Under the pieces are notes generated by a model. It saw only the letters and a list, made by a program, of their open reading frames with translations, made no database searches and was not told where the DNA came from. Made by a program: the position numbers and the translations under genes. Below, one piece after another: positions 10,591 to 52,624 of a stretch of 64,000 nucleotides of DNA (its first letter is position 1; every line of letters begins with the position of its first letter). The DNA comes from Macrostomum lignano (Eukaryota): positions 124,001-188,000 of the forward strand of contig NIVC01000728.1 of NCBI GenBank assembly GCA_002269645.1. Direction: 5' to 3'.

Positions 10591-11692
10591 AGCACGTGAT
10601 CCAGCTGCCACCGCAGCATGGCTGTCCAGTCCTCTCTGCAGTTCGGCTGTCCTACCAGCCAAGCGTGGCCTTCAAGGTCGTCCAGACCAGCTCGTCGCAC
10701 CAGATGCCGAGCATCGGATCCGCTCTGGTACTTCGATTCGCCGACTATTGCCAGCAGCAGCGGCACTGGGTGCCGAGGTCGTCGACCTGGAACGGCGGCA
10801 AAGGGCGCCATGACCCGCCTGACAAGCTTGTCCAGTTTGTGTCGCTGAAGTTGGTTCGGCAGCAGCAGCAGCTGGACGGCGTGACACTCGGCCAGTAGAC
10901 GACGAGCTTCCCGACTGAGCTCGTTGATGGCGCCATCAGCAGCATCTGGGTTGGCATACGAACTCAGGAAGTCGGACAGCGCTACTCGGTTGCTGAACCA
11001 GCGATAGCGTCGGATGTCGGCCTGAGTTTCGCCGGGGTTTGAATTAGCCACGATGCTGTAGGCCACGCGGGTTAGCAGGGGGTCTGAAAAGGAAAAATAA
11101 TTTCGACAGATTTATCGTACAGAACAAAACACTGCATCTGTTGCAGTGGGTCACGCGCAGACTCCGAGTCTCAAGCCTCACCAACGCTGCAGCAGGCGTA
11201 GACGGTCTGGAGTTCAACAGTCGCACCACATCCGGCCGCATCAGCCAGTGACAGGCGCCCCTCAGGCAGAGTGGCGAACAGGCCCGGGTCCTCAGCCAGG
11301 GTGAGCACCTCCACGCCACGGATGTCCATGTGCAGGTAGCCCTGTCGCCTCGCTCGAGCCAAGCTGTCCACCAGCTGACGGCAGTCCGCCTCAGTTCCGG
11401 CCGCTCGCAGCTCCTCGCCAGTCAGCAGGAAGTCCAAGCCGCAGGAGCAGCAGAAGCCTGCGCCGCCCTGTGCCAGACTGTGCCCGCTGAGCGCCTGCCA
11501 GCCCCGGCTATCGATGAGGCGCAGGAGGCTGCGTCTTCGCGCGTAGGATAAAAAAAAGTGCGCCGAGCCGATCACGGATTCGAACTCGCGACTGGCGGCT
11601 GCGCAGGCCAGCAGGTCGGAGACTGCTGTCAGGCGCAGGAAAATCTTCGCCAGCAGCTCCGGGGGCAGCCTGGGCAAGCCGCTATTCGGCAT
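10572..11692 (-). CDS. F-box protein, 340 aa, 2 exons; C-terminal domain possibly FBXO4-like
   Basis: Exons 11692-11182 and 11083-10572 (phase 1; GTGAGG donor, ttttcag acceptor). N-terminal F-box motif LPRLPPELLAKIFLRLTAVSDLLACAAASREF. Confidence 0.8.
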
Positions 11693-11907
11693 GTTGGTCA
11701 ATCCAATCTGTTGACTCAAGTCCGACTGCAGTCGCGGCAGCTCATTATTTATTGCATGCCCGACCGTTCATCATTTTTGTTCTTTTTAATGAGCTCGACT
11801 CTCGAGTTGCGATTTTGTTTTACTGCTCATACTGCTTGTCGTTTGGGGAACGGATTTGGGAGGAGAAGTGAGTCTGAGCCTTACTAGGCCTCGGATGATT
11901 TACCGCT

Positions 11908-12046: not shown

Positions 12047-14853
12047 AGTGTCACTGACTTGACTGTGTCACTGACTTGATTGTGTCACTGACATGATTGT
12101 GTCACTGACTTGATATTGTCACTGACTTGATATTGTCACTGACTTGATATTGTCACTGACTTGATATTATCACTGACTTGATATTGTCACTGACTTGATA
12201 TATTCACTGACTTGATTGTGTCACTGACTTGATATTGTCACTGACTTGATATTGTCACTGACTTGATTGTGTCACTGACTTGATTGTGTCACTGACTTGA
12301 TATTGTCACTGACTTGATATTGTCACTGACTTGATATTGTCACTGACTTGATTGTGTCACTGACTTGATTGTGTCACTGACTTGATATTGTCACTGACTT
12401 GATATTGTCACTGACTTGATATTGTCACTGACTTGATTGTGTCACTGACTTGATATTGTCACTGACTTGATTGTGTCACTGACTTGATATTGTCACTGAC
12501 TTGATTGTATCACTGACTTGATATTGTCACTGACTTGATATTGTCACTGACTTGATATTGTCACTGACTTGATATTGTCACTGACTTGATATTGTCACTG
12601 ACTTGATATTGTCACTGACTTGATTGTGTCACTGACTTGATTGTGTCACTGACTTGATATTGTCACTGACTTGATATTGTCACTGACTTGATATTGTCAC
12701 TGACTTGATTGTGTCACTGATTTGATTGTCACTGACTTGATATTGTCACTGACTTGATATTGTCACTGACTTGATATTGTCACTGACTTGATATTGTCAC
12801 TGACTTGATATTGTCACTGACTTGATATTGTCACTGACTTGATATTGTCACTGACTTGATATTGTCACTGACTTGATTGTGTCACTGACTTGATATTGTC
12901 ACTGACTTGATATTGTCACTGACTTGATATTGTCACTGACTTGATTTTGTTACTGACTTGATATTGTCACTGACTTGATATTGTCACTGACTTGATATTG
13001 TCACTGACTTGATATTGTCACTGACTTGATATTGTCACTGACTTGATATTGTCACTGACTTGATATTGTCACTGACTTGATTGTGTCACTGACTTGATTG
13101 TGTCACTGACTTGATATTGTCACTGACTTGATTTTGTTACTGACTTGATATTGTCACTGACTTGATATTGTCACTGACTTGATATTGTCACTGACTTGAT
13201 ATTGTCACTGACTTGATATTGTCACTGACTTGATAGTGTCACTGACTTGATTGTGTCACTGACTTGATATTGTCACTGACTTGATATTGTCACTGACTTG
13301 ATATTGTCACTGACTTGATATTGTCACTGACTTGATATTGTCACTGACTTGATATTGTCACTGACTTGATTGTGTCACTGACTTGATATTGTCACTGACT
13401 TGATATTGTCACTGACTTGATTGTGTCACTGACTTGATTGTGTCACTGACTTGATATTGTCACTGACTTGATTGTGTCACTGAATTGATATTGTCACTGA
13501 CTTGATATTGTCACTGACTTGATATTGTCACTGACTTGATTGTGTCACTGACTTGATTGTGTCACTGACTTGATATTGTCACTGACTTGATATTGTCACT
13601 GACTTGATATTGTCACTGACTTGATTGTGTCACTGACTTGATATTGTCACTGACTTGATTGTGTCACTGACTTGATATTGTCACTGACTTGATTGTATCA
13701 CTGACTTGATATTGTCACTGACTTGATATTGTCACTGACTTGATATTGTCACTGACTTGATATTGTCACTGACTTGATATTGTCACTGACTTGATATTGT
13801 CACTGACTTGATAGTGTCACTGACTTGATATTGTCACTGACTTGATTGTGTCACTGACTTGATTGTGTCACTGACTTGATATTGTCACTGACTTGATTTT
13901 GTTACTGACTTGATATTGTCACTGACTTGATATTGTCACTGACTTGATATTGTCACTGACTTGATAGTGTCACTGACTTGATAGTGTCACTGACTTGATT
14001 GTGTCACTGACTTGATATTGTCACTGACTTGATATTGTCACTGACTTGATATTGTCACTGACTTGATATTGTCACTGACTTGATATTGTCACTGACTTGA
14101 TATTGTCACTGACTTGATATTGTCACTGACTTGATATTGTCACTGACTTGATATTGTCACTGACTTGATATTGTCACTGACTTGATATTGTCAATGACTT
14201 GATTGTGTCCTTTAACTTGATTGTGTCACTGACTTGATTGTGTTCACTGAATTGATAGTGTCACTGACTTGATTGTGTCACTGACTTGATATTGTCACTG
14301 ACTTGATAGTGTCACTGACTTGATTGTGTCACTGACTTGATATTGTCACTGACTTAATATTGTCACTGACTTGATATTGTCACTGACTTGATAGTGTCAC
14401 TGACTTGATATTGTCACTGACTTAATATTGTCACTGATTTGATATTGTCACTGACTTGATTGTGTCACTGACTTGATATTGTCACTGACTTGATAGTGTA
14501 CTGACTTGATATTGTCACTGACTTGATAGTGTCACTGACTTGATTGTGTCACTGACTTGATATTGTCACTGACTTGATTTTGTTACTGACTTGATATTGT
14601 CACTGACTTGATATTGTCACTGACTTGATATTGTCACTGACTTGATATTGTCACTGACTTGATATTGTCACTGACTTGATTGTGTCACTGACTTGATTGT
14701 GTTCACTGACTTGATATTGTCACTGACTTGATATTGTTACTGACTTGATATTGTCACTGACTTGATTGTGTTCACTGACTTGATATTGTCACTGACTTGA
14801 TATTGTCACTGACTTGACTGTGTCACTGACTTGACTGTGTCACTGAATTGATT
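12047..14853. repeat. 17-bp minisatellite, 2.8 kb, two interspersed variants (TCACTGACTTGATATTG / TCACTGACTTGATTGTG)
   Basis: Direct reading; intergenic. Confidence 0.98.
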
Positions 14854-15489
14854 GTGCGCGTCATTCTTACTGTCTTACAAGTGCTACTCTGTCACCAACA
14901 TGGAAGTAACAAATTAACCCAATCTATTAGAAAATTCATATTTAATTGGTAACATATTTCAATTTGTTCTACTAACACATAACGCATAGAAATATTTTGT
15001 ATGCAATAAAATAATAATTTAATTTGCACGATTTATATGAGTAGTGCGTAGCGAATATAAAGGTAAAATTCACGAGATCAAGAGGGATGACACTGCTTCA
15101 AAATAAAATTTTTACAAACATTAAGTGAGAATTTTCTTTGGTTTCCTATGACACCCGGTGGGAGCTGTGTGCATGAGTGCGTGCCGGTGTACAGTATTGG
15201 CGCGCTTGTATGCTCAAGAGTTGCGTCAGCGTTGGCTGTGGGAGGATTTCGCCGAAGGCGTTGCGTCAGGGTGCCAACAGCCAGCCCTACTGTAATTATG
15301 GGTATTGTAAACCCCTTCGCTTTGAAGTGAATTTTTCTATAGATAAGAACTTTAAATTTTATTGCACTAAGTTAACAAATTCATGGTTTAATCCCCTTCC
15401 GCATGTCGTTTTTTAAGGGCCATGAGGATTTCCCGCGGGGGTTTCCAGTCGGAATTTCAAGTCAAATCCAATCGGATTTGAAATCGCTA

Positions 15490-16140
15490 GTCTAGTCTAC
15501 TCGTAGTTCTAATCTAGTCTACTCGTAGTTCTCTCATCTAGTCTACTCGTAGTTCTCTAATCTAGTCTACTCGTAGTTCTCTCATCTAGTCTACTCGTAG
15601 TTCTCTAATCTAGTCTACTCGTAGTTCTCTCATCTAGTCTACTCGTAGTTCTCTCATCTAGTCTACTCGTAGTTCTAATCTAGTCTACTCATAGTTCTAA
15701 TCTAGTCTACTCGTAGTTCTCTAATCTAGTCTACTCGTAGTTCTCTAATCTAGTCTACTCGTAGTTCTAATCTAGTCTACTCGTAGTTCTCTAATCTAGT
15801 CTACTCGTAGTTCTCTCATCTAGTCTACTCGTAGTTCTAATCTAGTCTACTCATAGTTCTAATCTAGTCTACTCGTAGTTCTCTAATCTAGTCTACTCGT
15901 AGTTCTCTAATCTAGTCTACTCGTAGTTCTCTCATCTAGTCTACTCGTAGTTCTAATCTAGTCCACCCATAGTTCTAATCTAGTCTTCTCGTAGTTCTAA
16001 TCTAGTCCACCCATAGTTCTAATCTAGTCTAGTCTAGTTCTAATCTAGTCTAGTGTAGTTCTAATCTAGTCTAGTGTAGTTCTAATCTAGTCTAGTGTAG
16101 TTCTAATCTAGTCTAGCGTAGTTCTAATCTAGTCTAGTCA
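15490..16140. repeat. 22/24-bp minisatellite CTAGTCTACTCGTAGTTCT(CT)AAT
   Basis: Direct reading. Confidence 0.93.
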
Positions 16141-16494
16141 AGTTCTAAACCTCGGGAAAACCTCGGGAAAACCTCGCTGCAGAAAAGCTTCCTGTGGAAA
16201 ATTTTCGTGTCTAGTTTTTTGAAGCCATGGTGTGTATTGACTGACTGCGAACTTGGAGCAACACTATTGAAGTCTGGCGAACTAACTGGGTTCAAACAAA
16301 ACTACTCTGGTTTGTCTATGGTAAAAAGCTGTTTTGACATGGCGCATCGAAAATTAAGAAAAAATCTCTACTTTGCTTTGGTTCTCGCTTATTAGTAGTG
16401 ATTGACACATCTACAAGTAGTTATATAGTAGTATAGTAGTACATTCCGACATTCCCAGCATATTAATAAATCGAGTTTCCACTTCACCAATTAA

Positions 16495-19411
16495 TCAGAC
16501 AAAACAGAGAAGGCGAAGAGCCAGCGGCACCGAAACCAGCGACATCAGCAGCGTCAGGACATTCGAACCTCGGAGTCGGAGAACTCCGCTAGAAGGCAGA
16601 GGCTGCCCCGCCGTCGCCGCTGGAACCTGCTGACTTCGGCGACTGCCTTCATCTCGACCTTCGTCTCCGGCCACTTCAAAACTCGAAGCGCCGATGTCGT
16701 CTTCCTCTCCAAAAGCGGCATTGTCCTTCAGGACACCAACGTCGCTGCTACCGCTTCTGCCGCTGCCGCCGTCGCCGCCGCCGCCTCGACCTCTGCCGTC
16801 GCCGGTCAGCCAATGAACGGCCAGGCCCAGCGGCCAGTTGGCCGAGTGGCCATCGATTTTGTCCGTGACGAACAGTCGCTGCTCCGGCGGGAAACCGTAG
16901 CCTTTGGACAGCAGGTTGGAGATGTGCACCAGGCCGATACAGGCATAGGGCGCGTACCGTCCAGTGCTGACTGGGCTGGCGCAGGCCGTCCGGGCAGCCG
17001 AGATCAGGTACGCTACGCTCAGGTTGGCAGGCACTGGCTGGGCGGCACTCGGCCACCGAGAGTAGTACGTGTTGGCCGAGTAGTAAAACGAGGAGACGGC
17101 CACGAACCGCTCCGAGATCGGCACGGGCAGCCTGGGAGTGGCCGAAGGAACCTCAAGCTATTATCGACTGTCTCACCTGTGCTCTCCCCTTATCTTATCT
17201 ATAAATCAGTCTCACCTGTGCTCCCCCCTTATCTTATCTATAAATCAGTCTCACCTGCGCTCCCCCTTATCTATAAATCAGTCTCAACTGTGCACCTCCC
17301 TTATCTATAAATCAGTCTCAACTGTGCACCCCCCTTATCTATAAATCAGTCTCACCTGTGCTCCCCCCTTATCTTATCTATAAATCAGTCTCAACTGTGC
17401 TCCTCCCTTATCTATAAATCAGTCTCAACTGTGCACCTCCCTTATCTATAAATCAGTCTCACCTGTGCACCCCCCTTATCTATAAATCAGTCTCACCTGC
17501 GCTCCCCCTTATCTATAAATCAGTCTCACCTGTGCACCCTGGCAGCCTGCAGCCGGTGCTCGTGCTGCTGTGAGCACAGGTCGTACCTTTCAGCGTCGTC
17601 AACCTGACTGTCGCCCTGCACCACAACCGTGATGGCACCGAAGCTGAAGTTGGCCGAGAAATTCGCCGCCAGGCAGGGCGTCACAAAGTGTCCATCGCCG
17701 CTATCCTCGCTGTGCCCGAGCAGGTCGAGCGTCACCTGAAATTGTCGGGGAAATTTTTTCGAAAACAATACAATACGCATTCACGCTACTGTAAGTAGCT
17801 AGAATTATAATGCTTAGATTTTTTAATAAACGTTATTTTGAAATGCTAAATTATCAATAAAATCTGCATCGCGGAGCAAATGTCTCAAATGTGTCACCAA
17901 AATCTGCCTCGCCTGGTTTCACAATAATTAGCCTCAACTGTGTCACAATAATTAGACTAAATTGTGTCACAATAATTAGCCTCAACTGTGTCACAATTAT
18001 TAGCCTCACCTGGTGTCACAATAATTAGCCCCCACCTGTGTCACAATAATTAGCCTCACCTGTGTCACAATAATTAGCCCCCACCTGTGTCACAATAATT
18101 AGCCTCACCTGTGCCACAATAATTAGCTGCATTTGTGCCACAATAATTAGCTGCATTTGTGTCACAATAATTACCTGATTACATATTATAATTAACCCTC
18201 TAAACGCACCTTGGACATGCCCAGAGTCTGGTAGCTATGCTGATGCAGCACGAACACTCTTCCCCCAGCGTCCGAAAATTCGCCACAAACTCATCGGACA
18301 TGGCCGGCCATTCCGGCTGGAAAACGATCTGCGTTGACCCGCCGCCCATGTCCAACAGTCCGTAGGTGTTGCCATGGCGACCCAGCGAATTCATGAGAAA
18401 GTTCACAGCCAGCCAGCCGTACAGAGCCTCCTCAGTGCCCGTCAGCACTCGGGCCGACACCGAACCCAGCCTCCCGCCCTTGCCTGCCGCGTCTGACAGC
18501 GCCCGCTTCGCCGCCTTCAACAGCCGCAGCTGGTCGGAGCGCTGAAGGCTGCGCAGGCCGGCCGTGGCCGCCAGGACCGCCTGTGGCGGCGGCGCCTCCG
18601 CTGGCACCCGCTCGCTGGCGAAGGCCAACAGCGGCGCCAGGTTGCCGGCCACCCGCTGGGGGAAATGGCGATAAGCGGACAGGCCCGGCCGGACGCTCTC
18701 GTAGTCTAGGCGGACCAGGCGGAGGCCGGCCGAGTGGCTGGGATCCGGCCGGAAGTGCATCACGTTGATCCGGGTGCCGGTGCTTCCGGCATCGAGTACC
18801 AACAGGTATTTGTCAGCAGCAGCGTTCGGTTGCTGCGTCGGTTGCTTGGCGGACTGTGTCGGTTGCTGGGTGGATGAAGTCGGTTGCTGGGTGGAATTCG
18901 GCGGTTGTTGGGCGGATGAAGTCGGTTGCTGGGCGGAATTCGGAGGTTGCTGGGTGGAATTCGGCGGTTGCTGGGTGGAATTCGGCGGTTGCTGGGTGGA
19001 ATTCGGCGGTTCCTGGGTGGAATTCGGCGGTTGCTGGGCGGATGAAGTCGGTTGCTGGGCGGATGAAGTTGGTTGCTGGGTGGATGAAGTCGGTTGCTGG
19101 GCGGATGAAGTTGGTTGCTGGGTGGAATTCGGCGGTTGCTGGGCGGATGAAGTCGGTTGCTGGGCGGATGAAGTTGGTTGCTGGGTGGATGAAGTCGGTT
19201 GCTGGGTGGATGAAGTCGGTTGCTGGGTGGATGAAGTCGGTTGCTGGGTGGATGAAGTCGGTTGCAGTGTGATATTCCGGTCAAATGTTTTCAGCAGTTT
19301 GCCATCTGATGGAGATGCCGGCTGAGACCCCCCAAACACTGATCCACCACCGAGGCTCAAGAGAAATAGAAAGCAGATCATCTGCTGGCCTCCAACAATA
19401 TTGGTTACCAT
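16495..19411 (-). CDS. GDA1/CD39-family NTPDase (apyrase) with N-terminal repeat stalk; 1-nt frameshift in the sequence as given
   Basis: Exons 19411-18210, 17735-17530, 17131-16495. Apyrase conserved regions DAGSTG, ATAGLR, TEEALYGWLAVN, DMGGGS, WPLG. Hydrophobic N- and C-termini. The HSY motif is in frame only if the C5 run at 18262-18266 is C6. Confidence 0.9.
17168..17537. repeat. 33-38-bp minisatellite containing the NTPDase intron-2 donor in most units
   Basis: Unit TATAAATCAGTCTCACCTGTGCACCCCCTTATC; the minus strand reads CAG|GTGAGA. Confidence 0.93.
17915..18175. repeat. 24-bp minisatellite AATTAGCCTCACCTGTGTCACAAT
   Basis: Direct reading; NTPDase intron 1. Confidence 0.9.
18830..19268 (-). 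repeat. 21-bp coding repeat (about 20 x QQPTSST/QQPPNST) in the NTPDase N-terminus
   Basis: In frame between the signal peptide and ACR1. Confidence 0.92.
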
Positions 19412-19694
19412 GGAGACGCTGTTAAGTTAATTGCAGGTAATTTCGTCGAAAATTTCTCTAACTGTTGCACTCGAAAATCTTCGACAGCAATGAATGCTTT
19501 TTTATTGAGAGAATGCAATTGTGGAAATATTTTCTGCGAGCTTCTGGTTGTTTGGCCGTCTGCTTTTTGCAAATGAAGAAGACTTTGGGGCTGTTCGCGT
19601 ATTTCCCTGCCACCGCATGGCTCTCAGGGAAGGATATGGGAATTATTTGTACAGTTTTAGCCTCCCAAAAAACAAAAAAAACTGCCGAGAAAAA

Positions 19695-19822
19695 ACCGCG
19701 CATGCGGCCTGCTGGTTCGAGGGGAATTGTGGTTGGGCAGGCAGGCAGCTGCCGGTGTCGAAAGCTTTGGCGCAACCGCAGTTTACCCTGCGGAATATCC
19801 GGGCGGGTAGATTGATTGGCCC
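19695..19822 (-). promoter_or_regulatory. Probable NTPDase promoter elements (NRF1-like CGCGCATGCG, CCAAT box)
   Basis: CGCGCATGCG near 19698 and GATTGG (CCAATC on minus) near 19814, 300-400 bp upstream of the ATG. Motif matches only. Confidence 0.3.
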
Positions 19823-20092
19823 AGATAAACTGCAGAATAAGTGCGCCTGCTGCAGCCAAGGTTTTGATATTTTAGAGGGGAAATGGGATCGCACTTTGAT
19901 TCAGTGCGTGTCTGACGCCACCGAGGAGGGGAGGAGATTTGACCTAAAATTTTTGTTAAATACCAAAAACTGAGGAGCTCACCAGGGGTTAATTGAACAC
20001 GGGAGTTGAAAAAATCTTGCAGCTGTGATTGACAGCACAGTTGGCAGGTGGCTTCTTGATGTGGCCGCTGCGGACAGTGTCCTCTTTATCGC

Positions 20093-20665
20093 ACTCCTCT
20101 CCTCTCCTCTCCTGTCCTCTCCTCTCCTCTCCTTTTTTCTGCTCTGCTCTCCTCTCCCTTCATCTCTCCCGTCATTTCCTCTCCTCTCCTCTCCTCTGCT
20201 CTTGCTCTCCCTCCATCTCTCCCATCATCTCCTCTCCTCTCCTCTCCTCTGCTCTTGCTCTCCCTTCATCTCTCCCATCATCTCCTCTCCTCTCCTCTCC
20301 TCTGCTCTTGCTCTCCCTTTATCTCTCCCGTCATCTCCTCTCCTCTCCTCTCCTCTGCTCTTGCTCTCCTCTCTTTTCCTCTCCTCTCCTCTCCCTGTAA
20401 TTTCCTCTCCCATAATCTCCCCTCCTCTCCTCTCCTCTCCTCTCCTCTCCTCTCCTCTCTTTTCCTCTCCTCTGCTCTGCTCTCCTCTCCTCTCCTCTCC
20501 TCTCCTCTCCTCTCCTCTCCTCTCCTCTCCTCTCCTCTCCTCTCTTTTCCTCTCCTCTGCTCTGCTCTGCTCTGCTCTCCTCTCCTCTCCTCTCCTCTCC
20601 TCTCCTCTCCTCTCCTCTCCTCTCCTCTCCTCTCCTCTCCTCTCCTCTCCTCTCCTCTCCCTTCT
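20093..20665. repeat. (CTCCT)n polypyrimidine pentamer array
   Basis: Direct reading. Confidence 0.95.
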
Positions 20666-21327
20666 CTTATTCAATCAAGTCACTTTACAGCCACGCCGAG
20701 GTTGCAGCTTAGTGAATCGCAGTCATACGCTCGAACATTTAGAGACGTGAACTTATTGCATCTGGTACGATGGCGGCTGTTCATTTACACATTTTTATCC
20801 AACGCCTGCTTCGACCGTCAGAGTCGCATGAAATGCTATGCGGATCTGACGGTTCAAGAATCTCTCAAGCTGCATCTCGGCAGTGTCTTCAAGCAGGAAA
20901 GACACGCGAAGACCATCTGGCAGGCCTGCATATACATTATCCATTTGCTAGTTAGCCCCGCAACGAAAATCTGAACAAGCCGAGTAATTGAAAATCCCAA
21001 TAGGCCCAAGATTGGGGTTCGGGATAATTGGATAGCGTTTGCAGGGAAGAACACGCACCTGATCCCTGCACTGCTGGTGCAGTTTAAGCTGACTTCCCCT
21101 AAGAATGAATCGGTCCGTATTTTTCGGCAGATAAAATCTATAGTAGGATTCCCTATATCCGGTCATCATGTACTTTTCCAAACCAACGACTTTCTTTATC
21201 TCCTTTGAAGATATAAGATCCTGTAATATTGTAATGGCCCTGCATCATTTTGAAAATTATGTATTTTGTTATACTCTGTGATGCTTTGTTAAACTTTGCC
21301 ATTCCTAATAGCTTGCAGCACAAATAA

Positions 21328-21645
21328 TACTGACACTACTGGCACTGCTGACGCTACTGACACTACTGACACTACTGACTGACACTACTGGCACTGCTGA
21401 CGCTACTGACACTACTGACTGACACTACTGGCACTGCTGACGCTACTGACACTACTGACTGACACTACTGACACTACTGACACTACTGATACTACTGACT
21501 GACACTACTGACACTACTGACTGACACTACTGACACTACTGACACTACTGATACTACTGACTGACACTACTGACACTACTGACACTACTGATACTACTGA
21601 CTGACACTACTGACACTACTGACTGACACTACTGACACTACTGAC
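21328..21645. repeat. 9/13-bp repeat ACTACTGAC(TGAC)
   Basis: Direct reading. Confidence 0.9.
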
Positions 21646-22025
21646 TTTCTATTGCGTAGCTTTTGTATTCAACACAAATATAAAATCAGGTCGCACCCTG
21701 TGTACTCGTACGAGAAAACGGAAACACACCAGAAGTGCAGATCTACCGAATTGCCATTTCAACGGCTGCTGATTGCCCCCCCCCAGCAACAGACCCCAGG
21801 CTTTTTGCCCGGGGAGTTCGGCTCCCCTCAACAGTTCGCTACGTGCCAGAACTTGTTATGTCAAGCAGTTCCTCTTGACTTTGAAAGGCGCTCTGTACGA
21901 CAGGTCTGTTTGACTCTCCGAGCCTTCATCTATTCGCATTTTACAAGTAAGACACTTCATCCTCTGGTCGCTAAGCATCTTAGGCAGCATTTGCAGTATC
22001 GGGCACTGAACTTCAGCTTTCCATG

Positions 22026-22865
22026 TATCACTGCTACAGCTTCATCAGTGTAACTCCTACAGCTTCATCAGTGTCACTCTTACAGCTTCATCTGTGTCAC
22101 TCCTACAGCTTCATCTGTGTCACTCCTACAGCTTCATCTGTGTCACTCCTACAGCTTCATCAGTGTCACTCTTACAGCTTCATCTGTGTCACTCCTACAG
22201 CTTCATCTGTGTCACTCCTACAGCTTCATCAGTGTCACTCCTACAGCTTCATCTGTGTCACTCCTACAGCTTCATCAGTGTCACTCTTACAGCTTCATCT
22301 GTTTCACTGCTACAGCTTCATCTGTGTCACTCCTACAGCTTCATCTGTGTCACTCCTACAGCTTCATCAGTGTCACTCTTGCAGCTTCATCAGTGTCACT
22401 CCTACAGCTTCATCTGTGTCACTCCTACAGCTTCATCTGTGTCACTCCTACAGCTTCATCTGTGTCACTCCTACAGCTTCATCAGTGTCACTCTTACAGC
22501 TTCATCTGTGTCACTCCTACAGCTTCATCTGTGTCACTCCTACAGCTTCATCAGTGTCACTCCTACAGCTTCATCTGTGTCACTCCTACAGCTTCATCAG
22601 TGTCACTCCTACAGCTTCATCTGTGTCACTCCTAAAGCTTCATCAGTGTCACTCCTGCAGCTTCATCTGTGTCACTCCTACAGCTTCATCTGTGTCACTC
22701 CTACAGCTTCATCAGTGTCACTCCTAAAGTCTCACCTGTGTCATTCGTACAGCATTTTCAGTGTCACTCCTACAACTTCATGTGTGTCACTCCTACAGCC
22801 TCACCTGTGTCACTCGTACAGCATTTCAGTGTCACTCCTACAACTTCACGTGTGTCACTCCTACA
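22026..22865. repeat. 23-bp minisatellite TGTCACTCCTACAGCTTCATCTG
   Basis: Direct reading. Confidence 0.95.
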
Positions 22866-23299
22866 ATCTTATCTGTCATTGTAATTTAAATTTTAAAGTA
22901 AGTTAAAGTTAGAGTTCATTTTTCGCAGCACACTACTTATTGATAGGCAAGTAGACAATTTTTTTCAAATTCAAAAAATAAATAGCAAAACTGATCCTTT
23001 TCTCAACTGAGATAATATTTTCCGAACGAAGTTAAAAGTACAGTCAAAGTTCAGGTGCTCAGCGTGAGGACTATAATTTCGTTGCCTGTGTGTTAGCCTG
23101 AGCCAGAGCACGTTGGCAGGCTGCCAGAATGATGAAGCCGCAGCTTCCGGGGTGATTTATATTTTTGCCTTGCCCTTTTCGCGTCAGCTAGAAATGAGAA
23201 AATAAAAATATTTGTTTTAGTCTTAATTGTTGAAATTCTTAGTTAAATTTCGGTTGCTAGGGTATCCTGAATATCGGCTAAGCCAGTGGCTTCGTTGCT

Positions 23300-26200
23300 T
23301 CACCAAAGATTTCTTCTTTTGCCGCGCAGGGGCTTGAATCCCCTAGCGTAGATTATGTCCTCGCTGGCCCACGGGATCTGGCTGCCGAACTGGATGTCTG
23401 CGGGTAATTTGTTGCGGGCGCTTATAAGGTGCTTTGGGGGCGCTTATCAGGGTAATTTGGGGGCGCTTATCAGGGTAATTTGGGGCTTTGTGGGCGCTTT
23501 TAAGGGTGCTTTGGGGGCGCTTATCAGGGTAATTTATGAGCGCTTGTAAGGGTGCTTTGGGACGCTTATCAGGGTAATTTATGAGCGCTTGTAAGGGTGC
23601 TTTGGGACGCTTATCAGGGTAATTTATGAGCGCTTGTAAGGGTAATTTGGGGCTTTGTGGGCGCTTTTAAGGGTGCTTTGGGGGCGCTTATCAGGGTAAT
23701 TTATGAGCGCTTGTAAGGGTGCTTTGGGACGCTTATCAGGGTAATTTATGAGCGCTTGTAAGGGTAATTTGGGGCTTTGTGGGCGCTTTTAAGGGTGCTT
23801 TGGGGGCGCTTATCAGGGTAATTTATGAGCGCTTGTAAGGGTGCTTTGGGACGCTTATCAGGGTAATTTATGAGCGCTTGTAAGGGTGCTTTGGGACGCT
23901 TATAAGGGTGCTTTGGGGGCGCTTATCAGGGTAATTTATGAGCGCTTGTAAGGGTGCTTTGGGACGCTTATCAGGGTAATTTATGAGCGCTTGTAAGGGT
24001 GCTTTGGGGGGGCTTATACGTAAGGGTGCTTTGGGGGCGCTTATCAGGGTAATTTGGGGGCGCTTATCAGGGTAATTTGGGGGCGCTTATCAGGGTAATT
24101 TGGGGGCGCTTGTAAGGGTGCTTTGGGACGCTTATAAGGGTGCTTTGGGAGCGCTTATAAGAGTGCTTTGGGGGGGGGGCTTATACGTAAGGGTGCTTTG
24201 GGGGCGCTTATCAGGGTAATTTGGGGGCGCTTATCAGGGTAATTTGGGGGCGCTTATAAGGGTAATTTGGGGGCGCTTATCAGGGTAATTTGGGGGCGCT
24301 TATCAGGGTAATTTGGGTTGTAAGGGTGCTTTGGGACACTTATAAGGGTGCTTTGGGGGGGGGCTTATAAAGGTGTTTTGGGGGCGCATAAAAATTTTGC
24401 TTTGGGGGCGCTTCTGAGGGTGCTTTGGGGGCGCTTATAAGGGTGCTTGGGGGCGCTTATAAGGGTGCTTTAGGAGCGCTTATAAGGGTGCTTTGGAGGC
24501 GCTTATAAGGGTGCTTTGGGGGCGCTTATAAGGTGCTTTGGAGGCGCTTATAAGGGTGCTTGGGGGCGCTTATAAGGGTGCTTTAGGAGCGCTTATAAGG
24601 GTGCTTTGGGGGGCTTATACGTAGGGTTATTTGGGGGCGCTTATATGATGTACTATATATATATTTACGTCGTATATGCTCTTTTATTTCTGAGCAATCT
24701 TTCAACGGATACAATTAACTCTCTCAGTGAGATTCCTATAATTGACGCTGTCATGCTTAATTGGTTACTAATTAATCCGCCACTGATAAAGCACTGGCTA
24801 CTAATCAATCCATACAATAATATTGTAAATTCTCACTATCTACATGCACACAGTCATGATTGGATTTCATAGAAAAGTACATTCTGTCCTAATTTGCCCA
24901 ATTACTCAATACTCACCGTAGGTTTTGTACCGTTTTTTCACCTGGCCCGTGGTCGTTTGCACTTTGTAGTTGAAACTGCCTGCAATTTAGGGAATAGGAA
25001 TGCTTCTCAAACAAACTTGCTCTTCTCAAAGTAAGGAAAGAGGTTGGGGGTCAGAGATCAGATGAAAGAGTTGCAAAAATTCCACATAAATTGAGATCTA
25101 TTTATAAAACCACGACTTCAAAAGTTGCGGTCAAATTATAAATTCCAATTAGTCAAGCTGCTTTGAAGAACAGGATGGAGTTAAAAGGAGAGGAGAGGAG
25201 AGGAGAGGAGAGGAGAGGAGAGGAGAGGAGAGGAGAGGAGAGGAGGGAGAGGAAAAGAGAGGAGAGGAGAGGAGAGGAGGGAGAGGAAAAGAGAGGAGAG
25301 GAGAGGAGAGGAGAGGAGAGGAGAGGAGAGGAGAGGAGAGGAGAGGAGAGGAGAGGAGAGGAGAGGAGAGGAGAGGAGAGGAGAGGAGAGGAGAGGAGAG
25401 AGAGAGCAGAGGAGAGGAGAGCAGAGGAGAGGAGAGGAGAGCAGAGGAGAGGAGAGGAGAGGAGAGGAGAGCAGAGGAGAGGAGAGGAGAGGAGAGGAGA
25501 GGGGAGAGAGAGGAGAGCAGAGGAGAGGAGAGGAGAGGAGAGGAGAGGAGAGGAGAGGAGAGGAGAGGAGAGGAGAGGAGAGGAGAGGAGAGGAGAGGAG
25601 AGGAGAGGAGAGGAGAGGAGAGGAGAGGAGAGGAGAGGAGAGGAGAGGAGAGGAGAGGAGAGGAGAAGAGAGAGGAGAGGAGAGGAGAGGAGAGGAGAGG
25701 AGAGGAGAGGAGAGGAGAGAGAGGAGAGAGGAGAGAGAGGAGAGGAGAGGAGAGGAGAGGAGAGGAGAGGAGAGGAGAGGAGAGGAGAGGAGAGCAGAGA
25801 GCAGAGGAGAGGAGAGAAGAGGAGAGCAGAGGAGAGGAGAGGAGAGGAGAGGGCAGGACAGGAGAGGAGAGGAGAGGAGAGGAGAGGAGAGGAGAGGAGA
25901 GGAGAGGAGAGGAGAGGAGAGGAGAGGAGAGGAGAGGAGAGGAGAGGAGAGGAGAGGAGAGGAGAGGAGAGGAGAAGAGAGGAGAGGAGAGGAGAGGAGA
26001 GGAGAGGAGAGGAGAGGAGAGGAGAGGAGAAGAGAGGAGAGGAGAGGAAAAAGTTGAAAGATGGGTAGCAGGCGGAGGTTCAGCAGAGGTCTAGCAATTT
26101 ATCGTGTTGTTTTTTGTTTCGCAGTAACCAGTTAATAAAAGTATCGCTATTGCTCTTTGAAGCGAAGTTGTCCCGTTAAAACTTTGATGCGCCCGTTGAA

Positions 26201-26315
26201 CTCGCGCGGTTGCCTCACCTTCTTCATCAGCATCCCGCTGCGTTTCCAACTGGAGGGCGCCAGCGGTAACCAATAACAACAGTAGCGTTGTGGCAAGTCT
26301 TAGATGAAGGAACAT
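23300..26315 (-). CDS. Small secreted prepropeptide (85 aa), candidate amidated neuropeptide precursor
   Basis: Exons 26315-26219, 24979-24917, 23397-23300, all phase 1 (donors GTGAGG, GTGAGT; acceptors ttgcag, ccgcag). Product: MFLHLRLATTLLLLLVTAGALQLETQRDADEEGSFNYKVQTTTGQVKKRYKTYDIQFGSQIPWASEDIIYARGFKPLRGKRRNLW. Signal peptide, KKR site and G-KR amidation signal. An in-frame upstream ATG exists at 26363. Confidence 0.75.
23402..24640. repeat. About 23-bp minisatellite GGGTAATTTGGGGGCGCTTATCA / GGGTGCTTTGGGGGCGCTTATAA
   Basis: Direct reading; intron 2 of the prepropeptide gene, abutting the acceptor. Confidence 0.93.
25185..26048. repeat. (AGGAG)n polypurine pentamer array
   Basis: Direct reading; intron 1 of the prepropeptide gene. 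Confidence 0.96.
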
Positions 26316-26884
26316 TTTTACCAGTTGCCTTTGATTTGACTGTGGAGAGGCTGAGAGTCGCATGGGGGGCAAAGTTCGAAATTTAGGGATTAAATTCTAT
26401 TCCAAAGTAGATCCTCTGCTCAAATCTGATTGGACGAGCCGTCATCAAGAGCTTCGAAGCTGATTTGTGACCAATGATGGAAATCGCTGCATCAAATATA
26501 ATCCAACAAACTGGTTGATGAACTGTCATAAATTTCAGCCAGGTTATTTACAGTTTAATCGGGGCGGATGCCAAATGATAAGCGCCAATTCACTTCAGCT
26601 CCTTTCTGAGTAAAACTTTTGAGAAAAAAAGCATTTTATATTTCTTCTAAATGAAATCCAGAATAGAAAATGATTTATTTAAAAAAAGCCGAGGGCAGAG
26701 AGAATAAAAGTCTCCCCAGACTATCGTAGTATTTTTTGAATAGCGAGAAAATTTAAAGCTAATAATTTCGTATCGGCCTGTGTGAAAATGGGGCTGCAAA
26801 TCACAGCATGGGAGGCTCTTGACTGGCTTTAACGAGGTCTTTTGGAACATAAGACTGATTTCTTGTGGAGAAAAGATTGATAGA

Positions 26885-27825
26885 TATAGTGAAAGGATAC
26901 TGACAGATAGAGTGACAAGAGAGTGACAGAGTGAAAAGAGAGTGACAGACAGAGTGAAAGGATAGTGACAGACAGAGTGAAAGGATAGTGACAGATAGAG
27001 TGAAAGGATAGTGACAGACAGAGTGAAAGGATAGTGACAGACAGAGTGAAAGGATAGTGACAGACAGAGTGAAAGGATAGTGACAGATAGAGTGAAAAGA
27101 GAGTGACAGATAGAGTGAAAGGTCAGTGACAAAAGGAGTGAAAAGAGAGTGACAGACAGAGTGAAAGGATAGTGACAGACAGAGTGAAAGGATAGTGACA
27201 GAAGGAGTGAAAGGATAGTGACAGACAGAGTGAAAGGATAGTGACAGACAGAGTGAAAGGATAGTGACAGACAGAGTGAAAGGATAGTGACAGATAGAGT
27301 GGAAAGAGAGTGACAGATAGAGTGAAAGGTCAGTGACAAAAGGAGTGAAAAGAGAGTGACAGACAGAGTGAAAGGATAGTGACAGACAGAGTGAAAGGAT
27401 AGTGACAGATAGAGTGAAAGGATAGTGACAGACAGAGTGAAAGGATAGTGACAGACAGAGTGAAAGGATAGTGACAGATAGAGTGAAAGGATAGTGACAG
27501 ACAGAGTGAAAGGATAGTGACAGATAGAGTAAAAGGATAGTGACAGACAGAGTGAAAAGAGAGTGACAGACAGAGTGAAAGGATAGTGACAGACAGAGTG
27601 AAAGGATAGTGACAGATAGAGTGAAAGGATAGTGACAGACAGAGTGAAAGGATAGTGACAGACAGAGTGAAAGGATAGTGACAGATATAGTGAAAGGATA
27701 GTGAATGAGGAAAGAAAAGAGAGTGACAGCAGGAGTGAAAAGAGAGTGACAGAAAGTGTGAAAAAAGGATGACATGAGTGAAAGAAGAGTGACAGAAGAT
27801 TGAGGGCAGAGTGACAGGAGTGAAA
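26885..27825. repeat. 23-bp minisatellite GACAGACAGAGTGAAAGGATAGT
   Basis: Direct reading; intergenic. Confidence 0.94.
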
Positions 27826-27869
27826 AAAGCCAGAAATGCACTAAACAACAGCAAATACGCGATCAGAGC

Positions 27870-29536
<1,667 letters not shown>

Positions 29537-30371: not shown

Positions 30372-32604
<2,233 letters not shown>

Positions 32605-34383: not shown

Positions 34384-41207
<6,824 letters not shown>

Positions 41208-42627
41208 GAATGGGCGGAAGAGACTGGGTGCCAACCCTTGCAGAGGTCAGCTGTGCTGCAGTTCAGCCCTGGCCGCCTTGGCTGGAACAGTTGTCAGGCA
41301 TGTGTGCACGCAAATCAAAGCCAGTGTTGCGGGGCGATGAGCGGCCAGACAAAGCCCGCCAATTATCTGGCGGCTAAAATTTCTCCAACAAAAAAGAAAC
41401 TTAAAGTGCGAGCCGAAGCAAGATGGAGAGAGAGAGAGAGAGAGAGAGGGGAGAGAATGGGCCAAGCCCGTTAACAGAGCGTTTCTTTCTTCTTCTCTCT
41501 CCATTTTACTCGCCATCTCGACACGTCTCTCGGCCGCAGCTCCCACAGCTCTCTCTCCGTAGCAGACCAGCTGTTCGAACGACTAGCGCTATGCCCCCCC
41601 CCCCGACGAATCGAGTAGGGGGGAGGGGTGGCTCACCGGGGGTTATGCAGTTGCCGAGTGCGTAAAAGCTCTGCGGCTGATTGGCTGCGGCACAAAAAGC
41701 AGTTTTTAGCAGACGCAGGCAATCCAAGGCGAAAGAAACCTCAAGGCAAGATGGAAAACGCGCAGAACTCGAATAAATGGTTGCAAATTGAAACATTGCC
41801 AAAAGCGTCTGCTTGTAGCAGCTTTAATTTCTTTTCCAAACAACGCGTTTTAGTCGAGGAGTTGTGAACAGACCGTGAGACCCTTACGAGTAGGCGATCT
41901 CTCTATCCACTCACCCCCTACCAGACTATGAACAGAACAGGTCTTCAAAGCTGTGTCTCCTCTCGACAACTCAACTCATTACAGAATACAAAAACTGCAA
42001 GAATTCCTAACAAAATATTGCATTGCTTGACAAACTCAGACCGGTCTGGCTAACAGACAGGCGCTAATGACGCTCTTCTCTTCTGCACTTTGCTGCAGCA
42101 GCAGCAGCAGCCCATTTAGAAATCAGATAAAAATTGTAAACAGAAAAATAGTTTTAAGTACCCGACAGACAAGGCGGTTTTCCTGTCATTATTCAACCTT
42201 TGTTTAATACCGTGTTTTGACAACGAACTAACCAAATCGTGCTAGAGTTTGGTTGTCTAAAAAGCAGCCAATTTAGTGCTCAAAAAAGTTCCAGGGCTCA
42301 GCAACACCTGACCTTAGACTGTCACATGTCACATGTCAATCAAGCATCATATCTAAGCGGACTTTGACTGCTTGTGGCAATATTTGGCTACAGAGAACAG
42401 CTCTTTTAGAAGAAATTATTTTATAAACTGGCGCGTACGTCACTCACCGAGCTCAGTTGGATTGCTTGTTAAAGTTGGTTGAGTCCCGAATAGCTGCTCA
42501 ACACGATGAAGCTTTGAGAGAAAGGGAGAGGCTGGGGACCAGTGACAACGCGGAAGTAATATCAGGGGCATCTCCACTCCCAGCCAGGTTGCACAGAGAA
42601 CTAAATAATGCAGACGCAAGATGGAGG

Positions 42628-45205: not shown

Positions 45206-45990
45206 CTTGAAGCAGAGCGCAGTCGGACGGTTAGGAGAACACAGAAAGTGCAGGCATACCAAAGTCTGGTGTTTGAGAGAGGCGACAGGCCCAGTTCGCG
45301 CATGCAGTACCAAATGTACAATCGATAAATGAAAGAGCTCCCATGCACAAAAGATTCAAATTGCCTTTGCGTGGGAAAGAATTTCTCTCGCGAGGTAATA
45401 CAGACTCCTTAACGACCCCAGTTGTGGATGGAATAATATTGAACATAAATTGGTTGTTTTTCGAGTTCTGACTGAGGCCAACATGCTACCCCGCTTGGCT
45501 AAACAGAGGCAGTGCGGGTTCGATTTTCCAAGCACCGGAATAATCGATTTAGAAAAAAAGACTGCCAGAGGTGGCTGGTGGCAGAGGCTTTGGAAATCCG
45601 ACCCGACTGCATCTTTCAATTCTGCTGGCGGGATAACTCATGTGAGTGTTTTGAGCAGCTGGGGGCATCTCACCTTGCCGTTTCTCTTCCATTGTATTTG
45701 TCTTCTATGGAGACGCATTGGAGAGGTGGGGAAAATTTTGATGAGGCGAAAAAGAAGACGCCTCTGAGGCCAGCGGTTTTGGGTTCCACGGGAGCGCGTG
45801 AGGATTTTCCCAGACTGGCGGCTCTAAGGGCCCTAAGCTGATCTCCTATTGGTCCGGCCTTGTTCCCCACTAAAACAGGCTATAAAATCCTGTGCGAAGA
45901 AGCCTAAGGCTTAAGGCTTAAATATCAACTGTCTACTGAACGCGGAGTTGCTCAAGTTTGATCAGAATAAAACTCACCCAGCTGCTCGGC

Positions 45991-48900
45991 ATGAACAAGA
46001 AATCGACGGACGTTGAAGCTCGGGTCGAAGTGGACGACAAAGCCGCTTCTGACGCTGCTAATGAAGTCAGCAACGATGCTGTTGCTGACGAGGAGTCCAC
46101 TGAACAACAGCAGCGACCGCAGCGGCCTGTGAGGCAGCGGCTCACCCGTCAGGAGCGGCGCCGTCAGAAGAAACTCGAACGGCGAAGGCGGCAGCTTCGC
46201 GAGGCGAAAAGTTTCTGCAAGAAGTTTATCGCCTTCATATTTAGCCACCTGGGCCTATCGGGCTTCATAGTGGCCTACACCTTTGTTGGCGGGCTGATCT
46301 TCCGGGCGATCGAGATGCCCGAGGAGCGGCTGGTCAAAGATGAGGCTGCCAGCTTCCGGAGGAGGACTACCGAACTGCTGGTCGAGCAGCAGCTGTCTGA
46401 GCTCTGCCCTGCCGAGTCGAACTCGAGCTCAGCGATCGGCTCAGCCTGCTCGGAGAGTCTCAACCGCCGACTCAGAGAGTTAGCCAACCAGACCGTGTCG
46501 GGCATCATCTCCAATGTCACCTGGTTGGTGAAGGAGAGAGGCTGGAACGGCAGCTTCGATGAGGAAGAGTTTACGTGGAATTTTGCTGGAGCCCTGCTGT
46601 TTGTTGTGACCGTGATCACCACAATAGGTGAGTAGCAGCAGTCTGCTTTCTGCTTGTATTTGCCAGCAATAATCTACCATATTAATACATTACTTTAATA
46701 TTTGTGCAAGCAAAAGTCACAAAAAGTGCACAAATGCAGCTTAAACTCGTACTACGCAGTAAAACAACCTGGCAACATTGGGAAGTCAATGATGATAGCA
46801 TAATTTACAAATCAATTAGCTAATTGAAAAAAAGATTATTTTTATTCGAATGAAATTAACTTCGAATTTCATCTAAAGCCAGCCTGGAGCGTGTTCGAAA
46901 TAGTGTACCGGAACTCGGCAGAATGCGATATTCGAGTATGAGCACTGATTATTTGACTGAGCAATGCGTCCCGTTTCCCTGCTCGTTCTCTGGCTGAGAT
47001 TCTGAGTACGAGTAACACATTATTGTGGGACTTGTGCCCGAAAATTGGTCGTGCGATTCACAGTTATGAGGGCCAAATCCCGAAGGCACAGAGAGTGTAC
47101 ATGCCTTACAGTTAGAAAGTCAGGGCCGCTGTACACCCCGTTCCAATCGTCCCGAATTCGACCGATTTAGCATGTGATCTTGGTTATAAAATTAGTGCTT
47201 TTGAATAATGTGAGGCCGTACTTATGTATAGGAAGTTGTAAAATCATCTCACATCATATTCACCGCGGCCTAAACACGATTGAAATTTTAGAACCAACAC
47301 AAGAGAACATGTTGACTAGCTTGTACTTGAAATTCCTGAGATGCAAAGCCCGAGACAAGATTACAGAAATCACCCCATCCCGTTAATCCCACCCACGACA
47401 TTCTGGGACTGGCTTGATCCAACTCTATAGCTCTTCGATATACTCGTGTGCGGAGCCAGTACTGGCTTATCGTCCTTAATCATGCTCAGAAAATAGCCCG
47501 CAGACAGATGAAGGAGAGCCGCGGAGGCCGCGATCGCAGTTCTGTTTGGTATCAGCTATGTTAGTAACGCTATATGCGCGATCGAATTTGCTTAGGAAAG
47601 CGTTAATACAGTTGCGCAGTTTTGAGTGACTAAGTCAAGCCTTGGGCGCCTGTCTGCTTTCTAGTGCTGTCCTTTTGTGTCTGGTTGTCATAATTGTAAA
47701 GTCATTTTCACTACTGTCTGTCTTTATCAGTTTGGTTATTCATTGTCACATACTGTCCACTTGTCCGTCAGTCTTTTACGGGGTAACGTCAGCCTGTCTG
47801 TCTATCTGCCTGTCTATTAGCAGCATACTGTCTGTGTCTGCCTGTCTATTAGCAGCATAGTGTCTGTGTCTGCCTGTCTATTAGCAGCATAGTGTCTGTG
47901 TCTGCCTGTCTATTAGCAGCATAGTGTCTGTGTCTGCCTGTTTATTAGCAGCATGGTGTCTGTGTCCGTCTGTCTGTCAATCACCCTTGAACTGCCCCCC
48001 TCCGCTTGCCCATTTCTGTCAACCCGTTTCGCACCCCAGTATATTTTCACAGGCCAATGCCATCTGTTAACGAACGCCAAAAGTGCAAACTCGACCGCGT
48101 GTGGGGAGAAATTAGAAATGGGAAGTTAATAAGACTACCAATCCCGACAGCCTTGACTAAGATTTAGCCGAAATCCCCTTCAATTTGAGCCGGGACTGAA
48201 ACTCGGCTCCCCACGGGAACACAAAATTGCCCCAAGAGGCCACTGAGCTGTAAGGAGCCGGGGAAGAAGCAGTCGGGATCTTGGCAAGCGATTGTCTTGG
48301 GCAACTGGCTCCTAAAATGCAGAACTTAGTTTCAAACAAGTGTTATTAGACAGTGAAAACTCTCAACATACAGTTGCTTTTTTCGAAACGAATTTTGCAA
48401 AGATTTTTTTGCATAGCGCTGAATGGAGTGGGGCTTCACCATGGCCAAGGCGAGTCGAGAAAAAATCAGAGCTAGAAATTCTTCTAGAAGCCAATCAAAT
48501 TACCCAACAACCGCCCGCACTGCCAGGCTACGGGCACGCAGCTCCGAAGTCCAAGCTCGGCATGATCTGCACCATCGTGTGCGCATTCTTCGGCATCCCG
48601 CTGATGTTCCTCTACCTGAACAACATCGGCGACTACCTGGCTGACGGGTTCCGCCTGCTCTACACCAACCTGTGCCGGCCCTATTTCAAAAGGTTCCGCC
48701 TGTGCGGCAGTCGCAACCAGCCTAAATCTCAGGGAGCGGCAGCGGGCGGCGGCGGCGGCGGCGGCGCTGCCGGAGGCGACCCGGCGGGCCAGGCCGCGGC
48801 TGCGAAGTTTGCCTTCGACATCATCCGCGTCAAAAAGCGATTTGCCCAGCCTCTGCTGCCGTCGGCCGCCGCCGGATTGGGCGTCCATCGCAACAGCCTT

Positions 48901-51900: not shown

Positions 51901-52624
51901 AGCATGGAAAAAATGGATTGAAACACGTCGATTTTTTGTGACGTGAAGTGACAAAGCTGAACTCTCTCATTAATGTGACGTTTGAATAATACAATACTTT
52001 AAAAAGAGTATTCTATCGTGACCAGAATGGACCTTGATCAGTTACGGTTGTTTAACTCAGTTCATGAAACACGAGGTACCTATAAATATTTTTAGTTCAA
52101 ACTTGGTAGCTTGTACACTATCACCTTAAGTTACGGCCAAAAAGCCTCAAGTAAACCTACCACCCGATTTGACATCTAAATGAGCCTAGATAACAGCCAA
52201 CTACTGAAGTTTTCTCCTACTCTTGATTTCTCGGACAGGCACCGAAGTGAACACGCAGAACCCCAAGGAGAAGCTGATAGCGACAACTCTGTACGTAGCC
52301 ATCGGTCTGTCAGTATTCGCCATGTGCTTCAAGCTCATGCAAGAGGAGGTTGTCCAGAAGGTGCGTCGACTTGGTCGAAGACTGGGCATAGTGGCTGTGG
52401 ACCCGGCTGTGGCGGCGGCAGCTGCCGCAGCTAAAGCGAAATCGTCTGCCTCATCGACAGCAGCGGCGCGACGGAAAGAGGCGCGACGGAAGCGACGTCG
52501 GAGGCGTCAGCGCCGACTGCAACGCCAGCGTCAGGAAGCTGACGCAGTCAAATCTGGTGTCGCGGCGTCAGCGACCGGGACAACTCCAACAACCGTTTTC
52601 AGTGTGAAATTTAGCGGTGATTAG
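45991..52624 (+). CDS. Two-pore-domain potassium channel (K2P/KCNK, invertebrate TWK-like), about 726 aa
   Basis: Exons 45991-46627, 48527-49684, 52239-52624 (phase 1). P1 TTIG|YG is split by the intron, P2 is STIGFG, and there are four TM helices plus a cap loop. A possible extra 5' exon 45483-45641 would splice in frame to 45982. Confidence 0.92.
47815..47965. repeat. 32-bp repeat, about 4 copies (ATTAGCAGCATAGTGTCTGTGTCTGCCTGTCT)
   Basis: Direct reading; K2P intron 1. Confidence 0.85.
51098..51553. repeat. (TTGG)n microsatellite
   Basis: Direct reading; K2P intron 2. Confidence 0.98.

Follow-up and report, generated by a model that had tools for sequence, protein, structure and literature searches.

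Several kinds of described peptide precursor resemble a candidate gene for an amidated peptide that lies on the minus strand, at positions 23300 to 26315, of a 64,000-nucleotide stretch of Macrostomum lignano DNA (contig NIVC01000728.1; the whole stretch is hereafter called the window). Bilaterian precursors that yield a single amidated peptide, such as those of the PDF and DH31 types, are alike in layout, being shorter than 100 amino acids (aa) and encoded by few small exons, and they likewise carry a dibasic site ahead of a peptide of ~30 aa, Gly-Lys-Arg behind it and a short tail. However, they have no sequence similarity to the M. lignano precursor, whose C-terminal Arg-amide, with its Pro at -2, has no match among them and whose own processing is a prediction. 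Among flatworm neuropeptides, the npp families are reportedly covered by McVeigh 2009 and Koziol 2016. Flatworm orphan prohormones, including the planarian spp/npp genes (Collins et al. 2010, PMC2953531) and the npp families, are likewise small secreted precursors; they surfaced through dedicated searches only, many have no relatives outside the flatworms, and annotation has often overlooked them. Natalisins share the C-terminal F-x-P-x-R-amide with the M. lignano peptide (PMC6880623) but differ from its precursor in taxon, copy number and peptide length, with no homology between the precursors. Protostome tachykinin-related peptides share Phe at -5 and the amidated C-terminal Arg, but differ by Gly at -3.

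The host, taken to be a flatworm when the locus was described from its letters only, is indeed one. On balance we lean towards reading the locus as a real, unannotated small gene whose product would be an 85-aa secretory prepropeptide, the orphan precursor of an amidated peptide.

Structure of the predicted gene

The hidden three-exon prepropeptide proposed in the preliminary description was confirmed at single-base precision on the minus strand, and its translation is identical to the protein quoted there (MFLHLRLATTLLLLLVTAGALQLETQRDADEEGSFNYKVQTTTGQVKKRYKTYDIQFGSQIPWASEDIIYARGFKPLRGKRRNLW, followed by the stop codon). The exons of 97, 63 and 98 nucleotides (nt) sum to 258 nt, which is divisible by three, and encode 85 aa; both introns are canonical GT..AG introns and in phase. 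The elements of the gene are as follows.

26219..26315, minus strand: exon 1, 97 nt; ATG at 26315-26313; codons 1-32 and the first base of Gly33
26315-26256, minus strand: signal-peptide-like M1-A20 in exon 1, followed by the start of the acidic spacer
24980..26218, minus strand: intron 1, 1239 nt, aag/GTGAGG...TTGCAG/g; mainly a (CTCCT)n array at 25186-26048
24917..24979, minus strand: exon 2, 63 nt, phase 1 to phase 1; remainder of the spacer
24938-24930, minus strand: KKR in exon 2, then YKTY, the first four residues of the 29-mer, from 24929
23398..24916, minus strand: intron 2, 1519 nt, acg/GTGAGT...CCGCAG/a; mainly a 23-nt tandem array at 23412-24645
23300..23397, minus strand: exon 3, 98 nt including TGA (23302-23300); residues D54-R78 of the 29-mer, to 23324
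23323-23321, minus strand: Gly79 in exon 3, predicted amidation donor, then K80-R81-R82 at 23320-23312 and the tail NLW
23156..23161, minus strand: TATAAA, a possible poly(A) signal variant 139 nt past the stop

The N-terminus has the appearance of a signal peptide, with a basic n-region (R6), a hydrophobic core (L7-V16) in which 11-residue Kyte-Doolittle windows reach up to 2.68, and, by a rule-of-thumb reading, an AxA-type cleavage site (TAGA/L) at the predicted signal end. An acidic spacer of 26 residues (L21-V46, net charge -3) is followed by a 29-mer (Y50-R78) bracketed by K47-K48-R49 and G79-K80-R81, which is the generic precursor layout for prohormone convertases and peptidylglycine alpha-amidating (PAM) enzymes. 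The predicted mature amide is YKTYDIQFGSQIPWASEDIIYARGFKPLR-NH2, with a calculated [M+H]+ of 3461.80 (monoisotopic mass 3460.793, [M+3H]3+ 1154.605); the corresponding values are 2956.405 for the spacer and 715.449 for GFKPLR-amide. As had been stated earlier, the list of open reading frames (ORFs) shows only exon 1, there as an ORF at 26091-26372 that runs on into the intron. Exon 2 is symmetric (63 nt, phase 1-1), and its skipping would preserve the frame and lose KKR, leaving the peptide with no N-terminal cleavage site.

Genomic copies and conservation

Two more genomic copies of the locus were located in the Mlig_3_7 assembly via relatives of the upstream gene. Neither is identical to the window sequence, and both contain all three exons, the four splice sites and an intact 85-codon ORF.

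Window copy: intron 1, 1239 nt; intron 2, 1519 nt; coding sequence used as the reference
L001, NIVC01001561.1:86808-88397: intron 1, 639 nt; intron 2, 693 nt; three coding substitutions relative to the window
L002, NIVC01000041.1:35217-37362: intron 1, 365 nt; intron 2, 1523 nt; coding sequence identical to the window (258/258)

The exon structure, the ORF and the processing sites therefore persist in three genomic copies, while intron lengths differ up to 3.4-fold among them (365 to 1523 nt overall). Two of the three substitutions in L001, L14 (TTA>CTA, exon 1) and I61 (ATC>ATT, exon 3), are synonymous, and the third, R82S in exon 3, leaves G-K-R untouched; G-K-R is present in 3/3 copies, exon 2 is identical at 63/63 positions in both additional copies, and neither of them has an indel in an exon. 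Three copies are to be expected because the DV1 assembly is rich in duplicated blocks, with 180 Mb at identities of at least 95% (PMC5730564).

Divergence of exons and flanks was compared in anchored local alignments of unique sequence with a one-sided Fisher test. Between the window and L001, substitutions amounted to 1.2% in exons and 3.2% in flanks, the flanks having in addition 7 indel events (p ~0.02); between the window and L002 the values were 0% and 1.05%, with 6 indel events in the flanks (p ~0.02). The flanks thus accumulated 6-7 indel events per ~1.2 kb. The coding exon of the neighbouring gene is 99.1-99.2% identical between copies, and the peptide exons therefore behave as coding sequence.

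An upstream in-frame ATG (26363-26361, minus strand) lies in the 5' leader (26316..26363) and would, in the window copy alone, lengthen the product by 16 residues; L001 and L002 carry a C>T change that creates a TAA after 10 codons and reduces this ATG to the start of a 10-codon upstream ORF. Because the upstream ATG is closed in this way in both other copies, the ATG of MFLHL is the conserved start. Between the two ATGs lies an acceptor-like sequence, ctctccacAG (AG at 26341-26340, minus strand), possibly a site of trans-splicing, a process that affects 38.8% of M. lignano genes (PMC5730564). Downstream, the TATAAA listed above may act in polyadenylation, and poly(A)-like hexamers are aligned in 3/3 copies, as TATAAA at offset 139 in the window and L002 and as AATAAA at offset 138 in L001, where an extra ATTAAA occurs at offset 74 after the stop.

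In L001 only, a 5.8-kb non-long-terminal-repeat (non-LTR) retrotransposon (13415-19225) lies 167 bp upstream of the peptide ATG. Its ORF1 comprises 506 aa and its ORF2 1233 aa, the latter with domains for endonuclease, reverse transcriptase and RNase H, and the element is bordered by a 12-bp target-site duplication, TTCCATAATTGG; the empty site is found in the window (26471-26482) and in L002. This insertion may separate that copy of the peptide gene from its promoter.

Annotation and an independent gene model

The candidate gene has no entry of its own in the annotation or in the protein collections that were searched. GenBank contigs NIVC01001561.1 and NIVC01000041.1 have no annotated gene at the peptide locus. 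The default minimum ORF of TransDecoder is 100 aa, a threshold at which an 85-aa product would be lost. Coding calls in Mlig_3_7 were made with TransDecoder (PMC5730564).

A gene model does exist for M. lignano in the older ML2 assembly, namely UniProt A0A1I8JMK5 ('Myb-like domain-containing protein'), which carries the EEG/SFNYKVQTT junction between exon 1 and exon 2. This protein is chimeric, consisting of the upstream orphan gene, part of exon 1, exon 2 and an out-of-frame repeat region of a nucleoside phosphatase (NTPDase); it spans window positions 18200-29536 and contains frameshifts. Compared with Mlig_3_7, the ML2 assembly is less accurate at the base level and contains fewer intact ORFs (PMC5730564), which explains the frameshifts.

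Coding signals and chance expectation

Codon usage was scored with a table from ~2,940 local coding codons. The log-likelihood was +13.3 bits in the proposed frame and between -3 and -46 bits in the other five frames, and the G+C content at third codon positions (GC3) was 0.65 in the peptide ORF, compared with 0.73 in local coding sequence and 0.47 in the whole window. The expectation by chance was estimated through a rule-based enumeration on the real strands and on reversed-sequence controls. A signal-peptide-like first exon with a strong donor occurred once on the real strands (presumably peptide exon 1) and once in the controls, and in-phase pairing with a G-dibasic terminal exon was found once on the real strands and zero times in the controls. 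Taken alone, the architecture exceeds chance only weakly. The additional evidence, comprising three copies with ORF and splice sites as well as the codon score and GC3, is moderate.

Homology and family membership

A word-index protein search with the 85-aa query gave no match, and the only true match of phmmer among 1.84 billion protein representatives was A0A1I8JMK5, from the same locus. No Pfam family at E-values up to 10 and no PDB sequence matched, a metagenome scan returned 263 pattern matches with 0 confirmed, and a look-up of the exon-1 read-through ORF gave no record. Two further phmmer matches, a bacterial repeat protein and a fish Ig-repeat protein, were rejected as repeat-amplified chance matches to the spacer region. 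The strings PLRGK, PLRGR, KPLR and ARGF are absent from the 8 supplementary files of PMC2953531, a scope that leaves aside the McVeigh 2009 and Koziol 2016 catalogues, and FKPLR, PLRamide and related strings had no relevant occurrence in the literature searched, where the lone 'FXPLRamide' is apparently a misprint of FXPRLamide. The peptide is probably an orphan, either lineage-restricted or fast-evolving, with no family to which its sequence can be assigned.

The suggestion that the peptide is tachykinin-like did not hold. Protostome tachykinins end in FxGxR-amide and none has been found in flatworms (PMC6880623); the C-terminus here reads F-K-P-L-R-(G), and membership fails because Pro replaces the defining Gly, with no sequence or Pfam homology besides. 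The alternative of a natalisin-like peptide was likewise not upheld. Natalisins end in FxxxR-amide, or FxPxR-amide in Drosophila, occur in arthropods and tardigrades only, and are mostly present in 2-15 copies per precursor in insects, with one each in the two tardigrades examined (PMC6880623). The FxPxR pattern is present at F74-K-P-L-R78-G79, but it comprises five residues matched after the fact and is accompanied by no homology; the precursor has one peptide and the host is a flatworm, which agrees with neither the copy number nor the taxa of natalisins. FxxxR occurred at 1/89 stop-free x5-G-dibasic sites in the six frames of the window, that of the peptide.

Other families were also considered and set aside. 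Pyrokinins and PRXamides have the C-terminal motif F-x-P-R-L-amide or P-R-X-amide, and the order here is P-L-R-amide. Likenesses to allatotropin (...ARGF), bradykinin/ornithokinin (GF-x-P-L/F-R, not amidated), NPY/NPF and DH31 were too short. Monobasic cleavage usually wants a basic residue at -4, -6 or -8, and trimming at the single Arg72 to GFKPLR-amide, raised earlier as possible, is not favoured because Ile, Asp and Ser, none of them basic, occupy these positions.

Proposed processing and alternative explanations

Flatworms are known to possess prohormone convertase 2 and amidating enzymes. For planarians, prohormone processing has been described by Collins et al. 2010 (PMC2953531). We infer that the M. 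lignano gene is transcribed and spliced in vivo as outlined, and that its product would be processed step by step in a secretory cell type. The signal peptide would be cleaved off after about Ala20, a prohormone convertase would cut behind K47-K48-R49 and behind G79-K80-R81(-R82), and the basic residues would be trimmed away by a carboxypeptidase. Peptidylglycine alpha-amidating enzymes would then use Gly79 to give one 29-residue amide, and the 26-residue spacer and the 3-residue tail would also be freed. Once discharged from secretory vesicles, the 29-mer would signal through a receptor that is most likely a G-protein-coupled receptor (GPCR).

Several observations weigh against a real peptide gene. 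It is a prediction from genomic DNA, its signal peptide was assigned by rule of thumb, and no homologue outside M. lignano was found among protein representatives, metagenomes, Pfam or PDB sequences. The +13 bits lie ~1.8 standard deviations below local coding chunks (41 +/- 15 bits) and are attained by 27% of random stop-free windows, and the codon score is for these reasons supportive rather than decisive. Layouts combining a signal peptide with G-dibasic residues are expected by chance at ~0.1-0.3 per window under loose rules. The copies are only 0-3% diverged, too close for a strong test of selection, which is therefore weak, and some intronic stretches, for instance ~250 nt past exon 2, are conserved like exons. 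It is conceivable, though we regard it as rather unlikely, that there is no gene at all, and that visual inspection joined three short stop-free stretches through GT/AG sites present by chance, the copies being merely young duplications. The low divergence of the copies with equally conserved intronic stretches, the signal-peptide-like exons that arise in controls about once per strand-window, the modest codon score, the failure to find homologues and the lack of an annotated gene would all fit this explanation. However, it would leave to coincidence five features (a start with a hydrophobic core, two strong donors, two acceptors, matching phases, and dibasic/G-dibasic bracketing), and it does not readily account for codon usage that is positive in the proposed frame only, for zero exon indels against 6-7 flank events, for the synonymy of 2/3 substitutions with the third sparing G-K-R, or for the choice of the same exon 1-exon 2 junction by the independent gene finder behind A0A1I8JMK5.

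A transcript may also be real and its product different, such as a non-neural gland peptide, an isoform that skips exon 2, or part of a longer trans-spliced unit with the neighbours. Exon 2 is skippable in frame, multi-gene precursors make up ~7% of the transcriptional units of M. lignano (PMC5730564), and A0A1I8JMK5 fuses the peptide exons to both neighbours. We nevertheless judge such a product improbable: a C-terminal Gly-dibasic and a dibasic exactly at the peptide N-terminus are typical of convertase and amidation substrates, each neighbour is delimited separately (the upstream gene by a stop at 27870, the NTPDase by an ATG with a hydrophobic start at 19411), and the chimeric model stems from the assembly of worse base accuracy (PMC5730564). 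Least credible to us is that the peptide represents the tachykinin/natalisin family in flatworms and acts via a tachykinin-receptor-like GPCR. Its C-terminal F-K-P-L-R-Gly-dibasic agrees with the FxxxR-amide of natalisins and with the FxPxR-amide of Drosophila (PMC6880623), it is the sole FxxxR among the 89 sites enumerated, and one monogenean flatworm is reported to have a GPCR of this kind (PMC9645230), no flatworm tachykinin ligand being known (PMC6880623). On the other hand, Pro stands in place of the tachykinin-defining Gly, natalisins arose by duplication within the arthropod/tardigrade lineage and are reported only there (PMC6880623), the precursor contains one long 29-mer and not several short copies, and the similarity ends at five residues, a motif picked after the fact among many C-terminal motifs. 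Since the monogenean receptor has been reported, a very small chance stays that the peptide is the missing ligand of flatworm tachykinin-receptor-like GPCRs, of a divergent FxPxR-amide tachykinin/natalisin type; if that were true, the FxPxR form would predate the panarthropod natalisins or would have arisen independently.

Genomic neighbourhood

The other genes in the window are as follows.

11174-11719, minus strand: F-box protein
18203-19411, minus strand: GDA1/CD39 nucleoside phosphatase (NTPDase), with its own ATG and hydrophobic start at 19411
ending at 27870, minus strand: upstream orphan gene, with its own stop
37842-41234, minus strand: protein kinase
45958-52600, plus strand: Ion_trans_2 pore-domain channel, interpreted as a two-pore potassium channel
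54990-60510, minus strand: armadillo-repeat protein

Since the neighbouring genes have their own ends, the peptide exons sit between two self-contained genes; no further copy of these exons was found elsewhere within the window. A search with the NTPDase neighbour gave no match at 1e-40, too strict a threshold to be informative. Tandem repeats (Tandem Repeats Finder score of at least 100) occupy ~25 kb, or 39% of the window, split over >30 separate arrays (periods 4-48 nt), of which many are intronic; the genome-wide share in M. lignano is reported as 15%. The N-terminal region of the GDA1/CD39 phosphatase (18837-19265, minus strand) carries ~20 repeats of 7 residues, QQPTSST/QQPPNST, which a 21-nt tandem array within the ORF encodes. 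Long (AGAC)n and (TCTA)n microsatellites at 28440-28749 and 31650-32483 adjoin or enter neighbouring ORFs; in the upstream orphan gene, for instance, the ORF as listed runs through CLSV/YLSI repeats that are spliced out in the annotated protein.

Implications

By itself, the peptide gene leaves the knowledge of peptide signalling unchanged. It illustrates that precursors shorter than 100 aa with repeat-bloated introns slip past the transcript-based annotation of M. lignano, and it offers a cheap and concrete target, consisting of two splice junctions, a single predicted mass and loci present in triplicate. If expressed, the gene would provide one more candidate signalling peptide for M. lignano, a flatworm used as a transgenic model whose neuropeptides are poorly catalogued.

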